DNA of 6,817 nt from Selaginella moellendorffii (GCF_000143415.4 NW_003314679.1:1-6817), one strand, 5' to 3'. Shown: positions 1 through 6,817, counted from the first letter of the stretch. The notes: generated from the sequence alone by a model not told the origin. Translations and numbers: made by a program.

Positions 1-409
1 GGACTCCACTTCGGACTCCAACTCGGGTCCATCATGGGTCCATTTCGGGTCCATCTCGGGTCCACCTCGGACTCCATCTCGGACTCCATCTCGGACTCCA
101 TCTCGGGTCCATCTCGGACTCCACTTCGGACTCCAACTCGGGTCCATCTCGGGTCCACCTCGGACTCCATCTCGGACTCCATCTCGGACTCCATCTCGGA
201 CTCCACTTCGGACTCCAACTCGGGTCCATCTCGGGTCCACCTCGGACTCCATCTCGGGTCCATCTCGGACTCCACTTCGGACTCCAACTCGGGTCCATCT
301 CGGACTCCACTTCAGACTCCAACTCGAGTCCATCTCGGACTCCACTTCGGACTCCAACTCGAGTCCATCTCGGACTCCACTTCGGACTCCAACTCGAGTC
401 CATTTCGGA
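1..409. repeat. Tandem array of 11/12-bp units inside the 3' LTR
   Basis: Units GGACTCCATCTC, GGGTCCATCTC, GGACTCCACTTC, GGACTCCAACTC and GGGTCCACCTC are read directly from the sequence. Confidence 0.97.
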
Positions 410-641
410 CACTCCCACGTGTCATGTGTTGGTCCTTTTGGGTCCCTTTTTGGAGCCTTGCCTTTTGCTCGCTTCGTGCTCGTTCCTCGAGCACTTCGTT
501 GGGAGTTCCACTCCCGCTCTTGACTTTTCAAGTCGGAGCTTTTGGTCCAAACGTGTTACGCTCTTTTGGCTCTCGCTTCGGCCACTACCATGTGGCGCCC
601 TTCCGGCTCCACTTTGGGGCCTAGGGATTTTGTGTCTCACA
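1..641 (-). repeat. 3' LTR, partial (U3 end)
   Basis: 208..641 is identical to 6160..6593. On the minus strand it begins TGTGAGACACA immediately after the PPT. Similarity stops at 642 (A) versus 6594 (G). Confidence 0.95.
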
Positions 642-654
642 ACTCCACCACCCA
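642..654 (-). other. Polypurine tract (PPT), G-rich with T interruptions
   Basis: The minus strand reads TGGGTGGTGGAGT directly abutting the TG start of the 3' LTR. Confidence 0.85.
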
Positions 655-662
655 TAGACGAA

Positions 663-682
663 GTTCGATGTCCTCATCGAAC
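663..682 (-). other. Pre-PPT stem-loop GTTCGATG-AGGA-CATCGAAC
   Basis: Perfect 8-bp stem with a 4-nt loop, about 8 nt upstream of the PPT. An equivalent hairpin lies at 6699..6716 next to the second PPT. Confidence 0.8.
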
Positions 683-752
683 GGTAAACCATTTTGTAAA
701 GTAACACCCGTATGTGTTACCATTTCCATCCTTGGCACCTAGCCAATATTTG

Positions 753-831
753 TCAATGGTTTGACATTGAAGGCTCACCATGCCTTTTGCATATGCCTCA
801 ATGGTTTGACACCAAAGGCTCACCATGCCTT
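753..831. repeat. Two-copy direct repeat, 45-bp period
   Basis: TCAATGGTTTGACA-TTG/CCA-AAGGCTCACCATGCCTT at 753..786 and 798..831. Confidence 0.9.
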
Positions 832-1847
832 GCCTATCCTCTAAGGAGGGTAGTCTCCCCAACTTAGAGACTGATTGGACCACAAGGATTAGTTCTCTCC
901 TTTTATTGGTTTAGTTCTCGCTAAACCTCTTAGAGACCCTTCTCTAAGTCAAACCCACTACTCCTTCTCGAGTAGTCTCAATTTCCATCGATATAACCTT
1001 TGCACTTTGGAACTTTGAATTTTGACTTCTTGGAGTCAATTTCCTAGGTGTCTCCGACACCTTGCCTTGCACCTTTTGTGCAACTCCACTTCCCATCCTA
1101 GGAAGTTCTCTACTCGAGGGCACCATCATCCTCTCTTCTATTTCGTGCCAAAGTTCCAGTTATCATACTTTGTGCTAGGGCTGTTCATGGCCCTATCATT
1201 TGGCTACCTTACCGCTCCCTCCCTTGGAGCTTCCACTTTTGCCAAATCGGAGCAATTCGGAATCCCTCCTTGGAAACACACTTCCTTTCCCGCAACTTGT
1301 TAGCGTCCAACACATTAGTGTTCCTCGCCTAACTTTGTCACTTGGATTCCTTCCAAGGGATTCCACGGCCCTATCTTGGCCATTCATCTTTTGCTCCTAT
1401 CCGTTGATTGTTGCACCAAGCAACATCGAATCTCTACCTCCCTCCTTGAGGTATTGTTTCGGTTCCATAGCAAAGACTCTTCTTTGCCAAGTCCGGAGGA
1501 TGTTCACCCCTAGTACGTCTCTTTATCATCTTCTGCTATGGGCTCTATCCACGGCCCAACTTCGTGACCCTCCCATGGGTCTTTTATAGAGACTACTTTC
1601 CTCGGACTCACTATGCCATCGCACCGACATAGTTTATTTCCCTTAGGTGCTCTTCCCACTTGGTTATCACGACCAAGCCACACCACCTTAAACAGTTCAA
1701 TTTCAACATTTTGAACCAGGAACTTCATTCCTTAGCCAACCAAGGACCTTGTCCTTATCTGGCCATAAGATCACCTAGTGATCTCACCTTGGCACCTTAA
1801 CAGAGTTGCCAAGAGGTACTTGGTCTTCTAGACCTCCAAGTTGTTGA

Positions 1848-2146
1848 CTATAACCCCGGGGGCATCCCCCACACTTGGCGGTGCACCCAAGCTAGCCCTT
1901 ACGGCCAAGGGTTCATAGCAACTGAGATTAGGTGTCCCCATCTCACTCACCACGACCTTGGTGCCACTTGCACCAAAGTGTTCAAGTTAGATATGCTGAG
2001 CTTTCACACTAAGCAATCTAACCGTGCATCACGACTCCGAGGCATCCCTCGCTTGGCGGTGTGCCCAAACCAGTCTCCCCACTGAGAGTCCATGACCACC
2101 GAAATATGAGTGTCCTCATATTCCAAACCATCACCACGCCCTAGTG
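1848..2146. repeat. Diverged two-copy direct repeat, ~180-bp period
   Basis: GGCATCCCCCACACTTGGCGGTGCACCCAA (1861) versus GGCATCCCTCGCTTGGCGGTGTGCCCAA (2041). Similarity continues to TCACCACGACCTTGGTG versus TCACCACGCCCTAGTG. Confidence 0.75.
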
Positions 2147-2197
2147 ATTTGGGACTCGAACCCAAGCACTAGAGGGTCGGGACTCGAACCCAACCTC
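2141..2197 (-). other. Two tandem tRNA T-arm / Pol III B-box-like hairpins
   Basis: The minus strand has TTGGG-TTCGAGT-CCC(G/A)A twice (15-bp direct repeat at 2151..2165 and 2179..2193). Each copy matches the B-box GGTTCGANTCC and forms a 5-bp stem with a 7-nt loop. Confidence 0.6.
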
Positions 2198-2949
2198 CGT
2201 ATATGCATCTACGGACGGCATCACACTAGATGCCTGGCGTGACTCCCCACGCCGGTGCACCAACCTATTTTTAAAGCGCGCTACAGATCACAGCTTAGGA
2301 ACCTAGTTCCTCCACACTGCCAAGTCCTCTCACTTGACATGTCTGTGATCATGCATGGACTCCTCCATGCTCGGCCCCATGGCCCACCCTTTTTTGAAGT
2401 TATCACCTTCAACTAGGGTATTTGTTCCCCCGACGTGCCAATCTCGCTTGGCAAGTCCTCCGACCATCGTAACATGGTTCCTGCATAAGCGTGAAAGTCC
2501 TTGACCATCGACTTTCGTTCAAAGCCCTCTCTTTGAACACTCGGGAACTACTTCCCTAACCTTGATAACCTTGCCTCATGGCAAGCTTCAAGACCACGCT
2601 TCTGCTGCGCCACTCTGATTTCGCGCGTTCCATGAACCATTTACACTTGGCCCTTTTAGGTACTACGCTACCTAGAATCGTCTTTGGGAACCTTGAAGGA
2701 ACTCTGTCCCTCAGCTTGCTAAGGCCTCCCCTTTCGCAAGCTTTATAGTTGCCATATAGTCTAACATGGACAATTCCATATTTTAGACTCTCCATGGCAT
2801 CACGGTTGCTAGCAACAACATCCTCGAGCACCCTCTTGATTCTCCACTCCCAACTTTCATAACCACTGTTGGATATGCCCTTTGATTTCTATGGTTCAGT
2901 TCCATCCCAACACTACTTGCCTTTAGCTTCGCACCTTTCCTTCGGTCAT

Positions 2950-3260
2950 TCTCCTCCAGACCAGGAGGATAGCTTTGCACTTTCTATCATGCCTTAGCAA
3001 GTATTCTTAGGGATGAACCTACCCAATAGCCCAGGGAGTGGTTCCTCAATCCGGGTATGCTCAGCTTATAATCCCACACACTGGGGTTACATTGTTGCTT
3101 ATGGGCCTTTACATGCCCATCACTAGCCTTGCCAAAATTCCATTTTTGGCTTTGTCCAACTTGGGTAGACAGTCCTCTCCTGTCTTCGCAACCTTGGACA
3201 TTTGGATAGCACCTTCTATCCATCATTCGCTAGGGACTTAGTCCCTTGGGCTTTATCCAT
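2950..3260 (-). pseudogene. Decayed aspartic protease; boundaries approximate
   Basis: ATGATGGATAGAAGGTGCT (3226..3208) reads MMD/frameshift/GA, cf. MVDTGA. It is followed in ORF 2987..3226 by EDRRGL, DGHVKAH and LGYWVG (cf. EARRLGL, GxMKAVNS, LGxWxG), then KAIL...GLE (cf. FxxILGLEF). Confidence 0.65.
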
Positions 3261-3334
3261 TGCCCTCGCGATATCAAACACCACCTTCTGGTGTTCTAGA
3301 GTGTTCGGGTGTCCCAATGATGGCTTTCTTGACA

Positions 3335-4260
3335 ATGAGTATTTCCTTTTATGACATTGACTTACTATATCGCAACATAAGAAACTTATCCCCCGTAAGG
3401 GTATATCCGACTTCCCTATACTAGAAGTCTTGGGTAGCTACCTTCTACCCGTTTAATCAGTTATTTTGCACCTCTTGCTTAGTTGCCTCATAGTTGTCAA
3501 GTCCTACAACTCATTGCTTGGTGCTTTCACACCTCCATCACTATCTAGGTCACCACACTCCAAATGCATGCTCTGCAGCTTAAGCTATGCCATTCCCATT
3601 TCCATTGGGATTCCTTTGGCAAGGGGTTCTCATGAACCCACCAACATAGCCTCAAGGTATCACACCTTGGCACATTTGGTGTCTCCACACCATCGGCTCC
3701 ACGAGCCTACCTCTATGACATTTCCCTTCGTGTCTAAGTCTTTGCCAAGACCAACACCGCTCTTTCTCATGCCAACCATCTGTTAGCACTGCCCCATAGA
3801 GGTCACACACAACTTTATGTCAAAGTTGTTTTCTTCTGGGAACACCTTTCCCATAACTTTAGCATGGCACATTTTGCCATCGATGAGATACTCTCTGTTC
3901 TCATCCTTGGATCCTATGATCCCCCGCCATCCTTTGTGGGGTACAACGCACCTCAGTCCAAATGCTTCATTCAGTCCTTTTAGGACCATCCCTTGACTCT
4001 ACTTGAGTCGTCTAGCAGTTTTGGACTTGGTTAATCCACCGACCTGTAAGGTCCTACTTGTGAGGCACTAGCTCACTGGAATACACTTCTTGCATTCCGG
4101 TCCTACTCAAAAGGACTATTTTCACAAGTGTTACTCCGACACTTGATTTTGTTCTCTGGGGGCAACCTTTGCCCCTTAGGACTACTTGTCCATGTGATGA
4201 GAATACCAACTTATCCACTTAATACACCCCCAACTCCTTGGGTTGTTCTAGCATTTATTA
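3335..4260 (-). pseudogene. gag: Decayed gag with eroded CCHC zinc knuckle; 5' extent uncertain (may reach ~4700)
   Basis: PKELG..VDK..HMDK* (~4180-4245, cf. PKxFxG..VDNFL..MEQYF), VESRD/VLKGLNEAF (~3960-4000, cf. IETWDxLKxELKxQF), REYL, CQGV (~3670), and ISFLCCDIVSQCHKRK (~3340-3390, cf. CFLCxGPHxxxxCPKRK). Many stops and frameshifts. Confidence 0.55.
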
Positions 4261-4719
4261 GAGGTAGCCCCGGCTACCATTTCAAGGACTTGAGTCCTCT
4301 TCCGTATTTGACCTTCCACGGTCATTACCTTTGGTCTCACATTCATGAGCACCAACCTCAACTATATGAGGATAATCTTGTGACTCCTTTATTGTTTTGG
4401 AGTCTCTATCTTTCCCGTGATCCCAACTTTAGTTGTTTACCACAACAACCTAAGCCAATTTGCTGAGACAAATGCTCATCCGGATCACATCCTCAACTCA
4501 ATGAGGAAAACCTTGCACTGTTCCCAAGATCCCAAAGTCGTTCCATTATTGACCCTTTTCTATCCACCACCTCGTCTACAAGTTCACACATGAACTGTAA
4601 TGGAGAGCCATGTCTTCCAGACTTGCTACTCCTCAAGGATAGGCCCACTCCTCGGACCTTCCGATGCCAACACTAGTGGTTATATACTTGAGCACCAATA
4701 AAAGTCGGACTAAGGAACA

Positions 4720-4731
4720 GCTCCGATACCA
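4720..4731 (-). other. Primer binding site for initiator tRNA-Met
   Basis: The minus strand reads ...CTTACA-ATT-TGGTATCGGAGC, an 11/12 match to the canonical plant TGGTATCAGAGC, 3 nt after the LTR-terminal CA. Confidence 0.93.
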
Positions 4732-5659
4732 AATTGTAAGCGACTAAATTTTCCATTCTACTTTAGTCACTTAACCACACCTCCGACCACTTGGAGGAGT
4801 CTCATTCACAACCTCCATCAGTCCAATTCAGGACTTGGGACTTGCTACCCCCAAGAAGGGCATCCATGCCACTCCACACTTGCACCTGGTCCAAGTGCTC
4901 CACGTGTCCGGTCCTGAGACTGACACCCAAAGGTACCACTGACATCTCGGCCCGTTACGCTAAGGCCATGCCCATTCACCTTTGCTGCACTAGTGGTTCA
5001 ACACCACTTGCATCACCACCTGGTCTCTCCAAGACTGGGCCATGTGTCACGAGTGGTCATCCTAGATCCACTCCTTAGCATCCTTAGGATGCCCACAGAC
5101 CTGGGGAATTGCCTTCCCCAAAGTCCCTTTGTCAGTTCCTACCAAGTCCCTTTCTGCCCCTGGCGGTGTTTGCCAACACTGCCACTGGATCGAGGCCCAC
5201 AGGCCCGACCACTAAGTCCCACGGTCCTCTGGGACTTCCTCACCACATGACTGTGTCCTTGGTCACTACCCCAGAGGACTGTTCCTCTTCCTTTCCACAG
5301 TCTGGGCCTTTGGGACAACATTTCGGAACACCGTGGCCTTACGCGAGCCACCTGGGTACTCTTCCCACCTATCGCCTTTAGGTGCTCTAGCCATGGGCTT
5401 AGAGCGGGTTCCGTTGAGCCACACCAGGTATCCAAGTAGGTAGTGCCACCCACACTTGGACTGGGAGCATCGGCCAGTCGATCTCCCGGGGGAACTAGAG
5501 CCGGCTCTTGAACACTTCACCAAGCTACCCCCCTTGTCGGTCTGTGTTCACTCTAGTCTTGGACTTCCCAGTGGGCAGCTCATCACCCAACACTGGGTCT
5601 GGCCTTCCTGGGCCAAACTAGCCTTTCCTGGCCAAACTGGCTCCACTGCAGTCCTCCCC

Positions 5660-5667
5660 CTACTATA
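5660..5667 (-). promoter_or_regulatory. Possible weak TATA-like element of the LTR promoter
   Basis: The minus strand reads CCCCAAAAG-TATAGTAG-GGGGAGG just downstream of the array, resembling the CCCC-TATAAATAG-GGG context of plant LTRs. It is non-canonical. Confidence 0.25.
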
Positions 5668-5737
5668 CTTTTGGGGCTCACCAAACCCCCCAGGGTCTGG
5701 GAGACGAACGCTTTGGGCTTTCACCCTCTCAGGCTCC

Positions 5738-6361
5738 GGACTCGGACTCGAACTCGGACTCGGACTCGGACTCGGACTCGGACTCGGATTCGGACTCGGA
5801 CTCGGGCTCGGGCTCGGTCTCGGCCTCGGCCTCGGTCTCGGTCTCGGTCCCGATCTCGGTCCCGGTCTCGGTCGCGGTCTCGGTCTCGACTTCGGACTCC
5901 ATCTCGGACTCCATCTCGGACTCCATCTCGGACTCCATCTCGGGTCCATCTCGGGTCCATCTTGGGTCCATCTCGGACTCCATCTCGGACTCCATCTCGG
6001 GGTCCATCTCGGACTCCATCTCGGACTCCATCTCGGACTCCATTTCGGGTCCATCTCGGGTCCACCTCGGACTCCATCTCGGGTCCATCTCGGACTCCAC
6101 TTCGGACTCCAACTCGGGTCCATCTCGGGTCCACCTCGGACTCCATCTCGGGTCCCATCTCGGACTCCAACTCGGGTCCATCTCGGGTCCACCTCGGACT
6201 CCATCTCGGGTCCATCTCGGACTCCACTTCGGACTCCAACTCGGGTCCATCTCGGACTCCACTTCAGACTCCAACTCGAGTCCATCTCGGACTCCACTTC
6301 GGACTCCAACTCGAGTCCATCTCGGACTCCACTTCGGACTCCAACTCGAGTCCATTTCGGA
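5738..6361. repeat. Compound tandem array in the 5' LTR: hexamer block (5738..~5893), then 11/12-bp units (5894..6361)
   Basis: (GGACTC)n, then GGGCTC/GGCCTC/(GGTCTC)n, then (GGACTCCATCTC)n mixed with GGGTCCATCTC, ending in 35-bp composites. Confidence 0.97.
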
Positions 6362-6593
6362 CACTCCCACGTGTCATGTGTTGGTCCTTTTGGGTCCCTT
6401 TTTGGAGCCTTGCCTTTTGCTCGCTTCGTGCTCGTTCCTCGAGCACTTCGTTGGGAGTTCCACTCCCGCTCTTGACTTTTCAAGTCGGAGCTTTTGGTCC
6501 AAACGTGTTACGCTCTTTTGGCTCTCGCTTCGGCCACTACCATGTGGCGCCCTTCCGGCTCCACTTTGGGGCCTAGGGATTTTGTGTCTCACA

Positions 6594-6817
6594 GTGCACT
6601 CTTGTTCATGGGCCCTTTCCCTCTATATTTGAACCCCTATGGATCGTCTCTCGAGTCGTTCCCTTTGGTTGCTTACAATCCACCACACTTCCCTGCAAGT
6701 TCACGCCCTCGTGAACGGAAGCTGAGAGCCGCAGCTCTCCCGAGAGCCCCGCTCTCTTGACACCCTACCCCTCAGGTCGAGCCCAGCGGGAGCAATTATG
6801 TACGCCAAGGGGAGGCT
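6594..6817 (-). mobile_element. Part of a second LTR element: internal 3' end, PPT (~6678..6693) and first 84 bp of its 3' LTR (6677..6594)
   Basis: The minus strand reads GTTCACG-AGGG-CGTGAAC hairpin, then GGGAAGTGTGGTGGAT, then TGTAAGC. This is the same hairpin-PPT-TG layout as 682..641. Confidence 0.65.

Follow-up and report, generated by a model that had tools for sequence, protein, structure and literature searches.

A very young non-autonomous LTR retroelement of Selaginella moellendorffii densely tiled with short perfect hairpins

Here, we describe a 6,817-nucleotide stretch of Selaginella moellendorffii DNA (GCF_000143415.4 NW_003314679.1:1-6817; the whole stretch is called the window below, with positions counted from its first letter) that is a single long terminal repeat (LTR) retroelement, the sense strand of which is the minus strand of the window. 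Its non-coding interior carries 104 short perfect hairpins where shuffled sequence carries about 24, and the same hairpins extend into the LTR and into the adjoining flank. We report the structure of the element, the counts and controls that establish the excess, the composition and maintenance of the hairpins, and the explanations that may account for them.

Results

The features of the window, with the primer-binding site (PBS) and the polypurine tract (PPT) included, are as follows.

1-641, minus strand: 3' LTR, truncated by the start of the window and aligning to 5880-6593; it consists of a 12-nt tandem array (1-410) and a unique end (411-641) with the plus-strand terminus ...CTCACA
642-660, minus strand: PPT-like stretch GGGTGGTGGAGT, read from the sequence; on the sense strand it immediately precedes the 3' LTR, abutting the LTR start TGTGAG
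642-4734, minus strand: non-coding internal domain of 4093 nt with the 104 perfect hairpins (5-8 bp, loops of 3-10 nt)
746-831, minus strand: 41-nt tandem duplicate (746-786 and 791-831), the copies differing by two 3-nt clusters
1836-1990, minus strand: first copy of an old internal duplicate, with ~65% identity to 2016-2170 and 6 hairpins
2016-2170, minus strand: second copy of the old internal duplicate, with hairpin positions matching those of the first and arm changes compensated on both sides
2196-2253, minus strand: three abutting 6-bp hairpins (2196-2215, 2217-2234 and 2236-2253)
4720-4731, minus strand: PBS TGGTATCGGAGC, read from the sequence, 3 nt past the LTR end
4735-6593, minus strand: complete 5' LTR of 1859 bp with TG...CA ends (TGTAAG...CTCACA on the plus strand); its unique parts (4735-5730 and 6363-6593) are both hairpin-enriched, with tandem arrays between them
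5737-6362, no strand assigned: tandem arrays in the LTR, with 6-nt (CGGACT) and 12-nt (GGACTCCATCTC) units and zero perfect hairpins of at least 5 bp
6594-6817, no strand assigned: flank outside the element, unrelated in sequence and with similar hairpins (e.g. 6699-6716)

The two LTR copies lie in direct orientation and, when aligned with each other, are identical across their last ~430 nt, their differences being confined to the 6- and 12-nt tandem arrays (unit substitutions and a 45-nt indel). Because the LTRs are identical outside these arrays, the insertion is very young. The PPT-like stretch adjoins the LTR, which is the location expected for a PPT, and the PBS has one mismatch relative to TGGTATCAGAGC, which we take to be the usual plant initiator-tRNA-Met PBS. 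With paired LTRs, a PBS and a PPT, and a long interior without gag, pol or env, this is a very young, structurally intact, non-autonomous LTR retroelement resembling a large retrotransposon derivative (LARD).

A preliminary description of this DNA, made from the sequence alone, had regarded 642-4734 as a former gag-pol region, now a non-coding retroelement interior with its sense on the minus strand, in which an open reading frame (ORF) had been converted into a hairpin array. The LTRs, the PBS, the PPT and the lack of coding capacity agree with the non-coding interior and with the assigned strand; the gag-pol origin finds no support. No stop-free stretch in 642-4734 exceeds 138 aa on either strand, and the longest (136-138 aa) lie on the antisense (plus) strand, because that strand is purine-poor, and have no homologue that we found. 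Twenty sense-strand pieces (48-110 aa) compared with Pfam at E<=1 gave nothing credible, the sole row being PKD at E=0.22, under the family cut-off. Word-indexed protein searches with three spurious ORFs and a full phmmer scan with a fourth ORF were blank. Nor is there evidence of conversion from an ORF; the interior instead holds old tandem duplications of its own.

Hairpins, defined as perfect stems with loops of 3-10 nt, were counted in 642-4734 and in 200 dinucleotide shuffles of that interval. The interior contains 104 stems of at least 5 bp (23.6 +/- 5.3 in shuffles), 57 of at least 6 bp (6.2 +/- 2.5), 20 of at least 7 bp (1.5 +/- 1.2) and 5 of at least 8 bp (0.4 in shuffles), and the enrichment is 8-13-fold over dinucleotide, Markov and block nulls. 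The 20 stems of at least 7 bp include all 16 that the preliminary description had listed, with perfect arms of 7-8 bp and loops of 3-10 nt, and four more (2493-2516, 3131-3150, 3277-3295 and 4159-4175); the excess over shuffles that it anticipated is thus borne out, and the back-to-back trio at 2196-2253 that it pointed to is real. The stems are, as it also held, not copies of each other, self-BLAST finding only three small paralogous pairs. Hairpins of at least 5 bp cover about 41% of the interior, at a density of ~25 per kb. The stretches poorest in hairpins of at least 5 bp are 4501-4750, the PBS-proximal leader bin, which is mostly interior, with 2, and 2501-3000 with 7; if the element has a conventional packaging or dimerisation signal, the leader may be where it lies. 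Some hairpins are overlapping alternatives of one another (751-766 with 753-770; 1948-1963 with 1958-1976 and 1965-1980).

The excess is specific to inverted repeats of a narrow geometry. Shuffles by Markov models of order 1-4 and by blocks of 4-10 nt yielded merely 6-8 stems of at least 6 bp, which rules out a bias in k-mers or palindromic words as the cause, and direct and mirror repeats of equal geometry occur at chance level, the direct repeats thereby excluding low-complexity sequence or direct repetition. Complement-only repeats show a small excess (12 against 5.3), and a bacterial contig used as a control of the method gave 48 against 29.5. Inverted repeats with spacers of 3-8 nt are ~9-17-fold enriched, those with spacers of 0-2 nt and 16-25 nt are not enriched, and those with spacers of 11-15 nt and >25 nt are only ~1.3-2.6-fold enriched; loops of 4-7 nt are the most enriched. 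By exact stem length, the excess is limited to 5, 6, 7 and 8 bp (+29, +32, +14 and +5, respectively), while stems of 3-4 bp and of 9 bp or longer show no surplus. A hard cap at 8 bp was considered and set aside as not significant, since with 5 stems of 8 bp only about one of 9 bp is expected.

Folding shows that the array is both dense and local, as the 'beads on a string' of the preliminary description implied. The comparison of folding energies with shuffles that it called for gave a mean z-score of -2.15 for 100-nt windows on either strand, folds of 500 nt lie ~40 kcal/mol below those of shuffles, and in these 500-nt folds 66% of base pairs span <=30 nt, compared with 45% in shuffles. On either strand, the minimum-free-energy fold contains 70-71 of the 104 hairpins intact.

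Pairing in the stems is strictly Watson-Crick. Wobble (G:U-type) positions occur at chance on both strands. The bases just outside each stem match base composition, neither G:T nor A:C being over-represented, and among helices with one internal mismatch those of 5-6 total pairs occur at the chance level while those of 7-9 exceed it only marginally. Perfect arms without wobble fit arms that are mutual copies, which lack the G:U pairs normally carried by structures selected as RNA, and the arms are indeed as template switching would leave them, perfect and free of wobble-bearing or decayed intermediates. The dinucleotides of the arms equal those of chance hairpins drawn from the same background, with CpG at 1.0% included, and the arms are therefore native sequence, which speaks against planted or foreign stems. 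A special CpG deficit of the stems was rejected, as their observed/expected value of 0.16 is the chance-hairpin value for this background.

That background is itself informative. Across 642-5730, CpG observed/expected is 0.35-0.49 and CAG, CTG and CCG stand at 0.43-0.47, with TTG, CAA, TGG and CCA in excess, and the depletion of CG and CWG is coherent throughout the window. This is a CG and CHG methylation signature, hence a plant-like host and not human sequence, and the depletion is plant-type methylation decay that this copy, with its still identical LTRs, has inherited.

Loops differ from the rest of the interior. On the plus strand they contain 8% G and 39% C (17% and 30%, respectively, in chance hairpins), and their composition departs from that of the linkers (p=4e-7). 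Sense-strand loops are therefore G/A-rich and C-poor, which is the sole strand-specific signal that we found; the commonest sense-strand loop triplets are GAG, AGG and GGA, and the commonest tetraloop is GGAG (3 of 20), which is also the tetraloop of HIV-1 SL3. Deamination of loop cytosines was rejected as the source of this bias, because the depleted base has not given way to the transition product that deamination would leave.

The hairpins also appear to be maintained, as the preliminary description supposed, since the diverged internal duplicates keep their positions and show compensation on both arms. The copies at 1836-1990 and 2016-2170 share 5-6 hairpins at matching positions. In one, TGAGAT...ATCTCA corresponds to AATATGAG...CTCATATT around a shared TGTC loop core, with 3 two-sided pair changes and no one-sided change; in another, GGGGG/CCCCC corresponds to CGAGG/CCTCG, with 1 two-sided change (2 in a structure-based alignment) and again no one-sided change. 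Identity between the copies is 76-77% in stems and loops and 58% in linkers, from small numbers of positions. In the 41-nt duplicates at 746-786 and 791-831, all six differing bases fall in the two 3-nt runs, and in each copy, at this single locus, each run is complementary to a neighbouring stretch, so that each copy forms a different hairpin. Because the runs are complementary to their neighbours, they match the clustered differences left by template switching.

Hairpin enrichment is not specific to the interior, contrary to what the preliminary description implied by confining it to 642-4734. Stems of at least 6 bp number 10 in the unique LTR at 4735-5720 (2.0 in shuffles), 2 in the LTR at 6351-6592 (0.25) and 3 in the flank, tested as 6593-6817 (0.4). 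The flank (6594-6817) holds 5 hairpins of at least 5 bp, among them the 7-bp stem with a CCCT loop at 6699-6716 and interleaved GAGAGC/GCTCTC arms at 6720-6756, and is pyrimidine-rich on the plus strand, like the element. Its hairpins and composition suggest either that the element is nested in DNA of a similar kind or that the property is genome-wide.

The LTR arrays (1-410 and 5737-6362) yield spurious low-complexity ORFs of 170-340 aa on both strands, and their folding z-scores are much lower on the sense strand (z -3.9 to -5.1) than on the plus strand (z -1.5 to -3.0). Exact-protein look-ups of the two longest LTR ORFs found nothing on record. Rfam 15 at E<=1 gave weak chance matches only (MIR2933 in the LTR arrays, E 0.1; SCARNA18, E 0.28), and ARAGORN detected no tRNA in the window. 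A tRNA T-arm-like motif, GGGTTCGAGTCCC with the 7-nt loop TTCGAGT, occurs twice on the sense strand (2149-2165 and 2177-2195), where ARAGORN and Rfam likewise give no tRNA; it may be the remnant of a captured tRNA or of a short interspersed nuclear element (SINE) fragment.

Relatives were also sought with short exact strings, in DNA collections that hold little plant DNA, so that blanks were expected. A 24-mer from the LTR array had no match in viral contigs and matched two loci in metagenome contigs (L001 and L002), which share the repeat unit alone and are otherwise unrelated. A 19-mer from the LTR end had no match in genome and viral contigs, and one spanning the PBS/LTR junction matched a single bacterial contig from a metagenome-assembled genome (L003, 443-461; JAGODA010000128.1) that is otherwise dissimilar. 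All three of these exact 19-24-mer matches are chance or repeat-unit matches. The PBS string was found in the literature only in unrelated primers.

Discussion

In overall plan the element is like a LARD such as Sukkula of the Triticeae, with LTRs, a PBS, a PPT and an interior of ~4 kb that lacks gag, pol and env, and would accordingly be mobilised in trans. LARD LTRs are ~4.4 kb long, compared with 1.86 kb in this element. To our knowledge, LARDs have not been reported with a tiling of ~100 short perfect hairpins (~9 times chance) or as wobble-free, nor are we aware of any account of an interior and LTR that carry perfect 5-8-bp hairpins at ~25 per kb. The precedent that the preliminary description invoked, of a conserved structured interior, is in the literature, where conserved RNA structures are reported for LARDs (PMC7215508).

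We tentatively favour, with confidence that stops somewhat short of even, a combined reading in which the hairpins arose as templated inverted copies and were then retained as local stem-loops in the RNA or cDNA of the element. A polymerase would briefly switch template, or its nascent strand would snap back, and copy neighbouring bases in reverse complement; each such event would write perfect arms at once and could re-match an arm after mutation. The likely polymerase is the reverse transcriptase by which the element is copied every generation. The active lineage would then tolerate or favour an RNA/cDNA composed of many independent mini stem-loops, in which loops and linkers are rich in purines (G/A) and long duplexes are lacking, selection acting as the presumed keeper. 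Sites of exposed G could bind Gag/nucleocapsid provided in trans by an autonomous partner, which would give the array a role in packaging, and the short stems would melt easily for reverse transcriptase and be too short for Dicer. Among known packaging and dimerisation signals, SL1-SL4 of HIV-1 psi and the 5' TIPIRT domain of Ty1 (PMC5454406) are likewise short stem-loops exposing purines, especially G, and act in cis for a Gag that can come in trans; such signals, however, amount to a handful of hairpins in the first few hundred nt, in the leader, whereas the present array covers the whole element and is poor in hairpins over its PBS-proximal 250 nt.

The first part of this reading has a precedent, as a single template switch can yield perfect stems and compensatory changes at several bases (Mönttinen and Löytynoja 2022, PMC8794818). 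The present hairpins share with the published ones perfect arms such as one step would write, compensated changes without G:U intermediates, and clusters that match neighbouring sequence; the published events, however, are sporadic and concern rRNA and miRNA genes and DNA replication, whereas here they would occur at ~25 per kb over >5 kb, with reverse transcription suspected. Strict Watson-Crick pairing, native arms and templated clusters thus match template-switch mutation. The loop bias, the conserved positions and the near-absence of decayed hairpins, for their part, argue against mere creation followed by decay, and for hairpins kept perfect either by selection in the active lineage or by very frequent re-copying. 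An RNA function of the hairpins is plausible.

Of the selection on RNA that the preliminary description proposed, the local and maintained array is what such selection would leave, but the pairing is Watson-Crick only, with G:U at chance, and the two strands fold equally. These two features point no less to templated DNA copying, or to a constraint on DNA or single-stranded DNA, than to RNA selection.

Several points weigh against the combined reading. The equal folding of the two strands does not single out the transcript as the selected molecule, and no polarity of the arms marks the strand of synthesis: the purine fraction of the 5' arm is 0.53, compared with 0.50 in shuffles, on which ground arm polarity was rejected as a guide to the strand of cDNA synthesis, minus or plus. 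The enrichment in the 224-bp flank would also be compatible with an excess that belongs to the host genome or to an adjacent element. All evidence comes from a single copy of the element, with in-window paralogues as its only homologues, and the covariation within the window is that of two sequences, with 54 of 500 shuffles (a weak control) reaching the observed value. Switching would have to be unusually frequent to keep ~100 hairpins perfect unaided, and known retroelement packaging signals are confined to the leader and not spread across 4 kb.

A bolder form of the combined reading, which we consider unlikely, is that the whole body of the element was written and continually re-matched by intramolecular switching during reverse transcription and selected to soak up the Gag/nucleocapsid of the partner, making it a packaging signal of genome length. 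The element would then be a 'parasite of a parasite', with ~100 stem-loops bearing G-rich loops on stems that can be copied and are not Dicer substrates.

Four other explanations were weighed against the combined reading. The hairpins could be a neutral by-product of switching or snap-back by reverse transcriptase or by host replication or repair, in which existing hairpins would be hot spots for further switching and the array would need no function, being a record of frequent switching in unconstrained sequence; we consider this explanation somewhat unlikely. It would account for the strict Watson-Crick arms without wobble, the clustered 3-nt differences complementary to neighbouring stretches, the overlapping alternative hairpins, the enrichment in LTR and flank and the equal folding of the strands. 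It also predicts, however, that one-mismatch or 4-bp hairpins should be about as common as perfect ones, and these are found at chance; moreover, hairpin positions persist despite 35% divergence of the duplicates, and the depletion of loop G on one strand beyond background is not predicted by switching alone. If, instead, a gag-pol ORF had been freed of coding constraint and turned into a hairpin array by selection on the transcript (for packaging, stability or escape from silencing), one would expect the dense, local and maintained array in a non-coding interior, the purine-rich, C-poor sense-strand loops and the conserved RNA secondary structures that LARDs are reported to specify (PMC7215508). 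This is nonetheless quite improbable: the 20 sense-strand pieces hold no credible trace of gag or pol beyond the sub-threshold PKD row, the flank carries hairpins too, G:U pairs are absent although RNA selection tolerates them, and the sense strand folds no better than the antisense.

That the hairpins are dyad symmetries at the level of DNA, favouring non-B forms (cruciforms or hairpins) in double-stranded or replicating DNA and belonging to a compartment such as the centromere or to the whole genome, is decidedly improbable. Cruciforms would have to extrude from very short arms (5-8 bp), and the composition of the loops is strand-biased beyond that of the linkers, which is unexpected for a feature purely of duplex DNA; perfect Watson-Crick arms, strand symmetry, and enrichment in the LTR, the interior and an unrelated flank alike would nevertheless be expected of such a feature. 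Dyads of <10 bp are reported to be enriched in centromeric DNA (PMC5889037), and the same is reported for oat centromeres with their retrotransposons (PMC9910436); the likeness is one of abundant perfect dyads of 4-8 bp in repeats that contain retrotransposons, proposed to form non-B DNA, but the enrichments are described as modest, compartment-level statistical differences in density and not ~9-fold. Perfect inverted repeats of eukaryotes in general mostly have zero spacers (PMC13155455), whereas those of this element have spacers of 3-8 nt and show no enrichment at 0-2 nt. A non-natural origin, as an assembly artefact or a construct with planted stems, would suit the sharp lower bound of 5 bp, the lack of stems of 9 bp or more and the lack of relatives in the collections searched, but is very improbable, given that the arms follow the background dinucleotides (squared CpG deficit included), that CG and CWG depletion is coherent across the window, that the LTRs, PBS and PPT are coherent, with diverged arrays inside otherwise identical LTRs and old duplications inside the interior, and that blanks were to be expected from collections with little plant DNA.

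If the array is selected, as the combined reading would have it, the interior of a non-autonomous element would be an evolved RNA/cDNA architecture and not junk filler, and would offer a concrete, testable model of how parasites of the LARD type contend for the Gag that an autonomous partner makes. If the array is purely mutational, the element would be among the densest natural records of template-switch mutagenesis, and a window on the snap-back errors of a plant reverse transcriptase or of host replication and repair. Either way, its conserved hairpin positions, compensated arms and lack of wobble intermediates bear on how stems stay paired in evolution.

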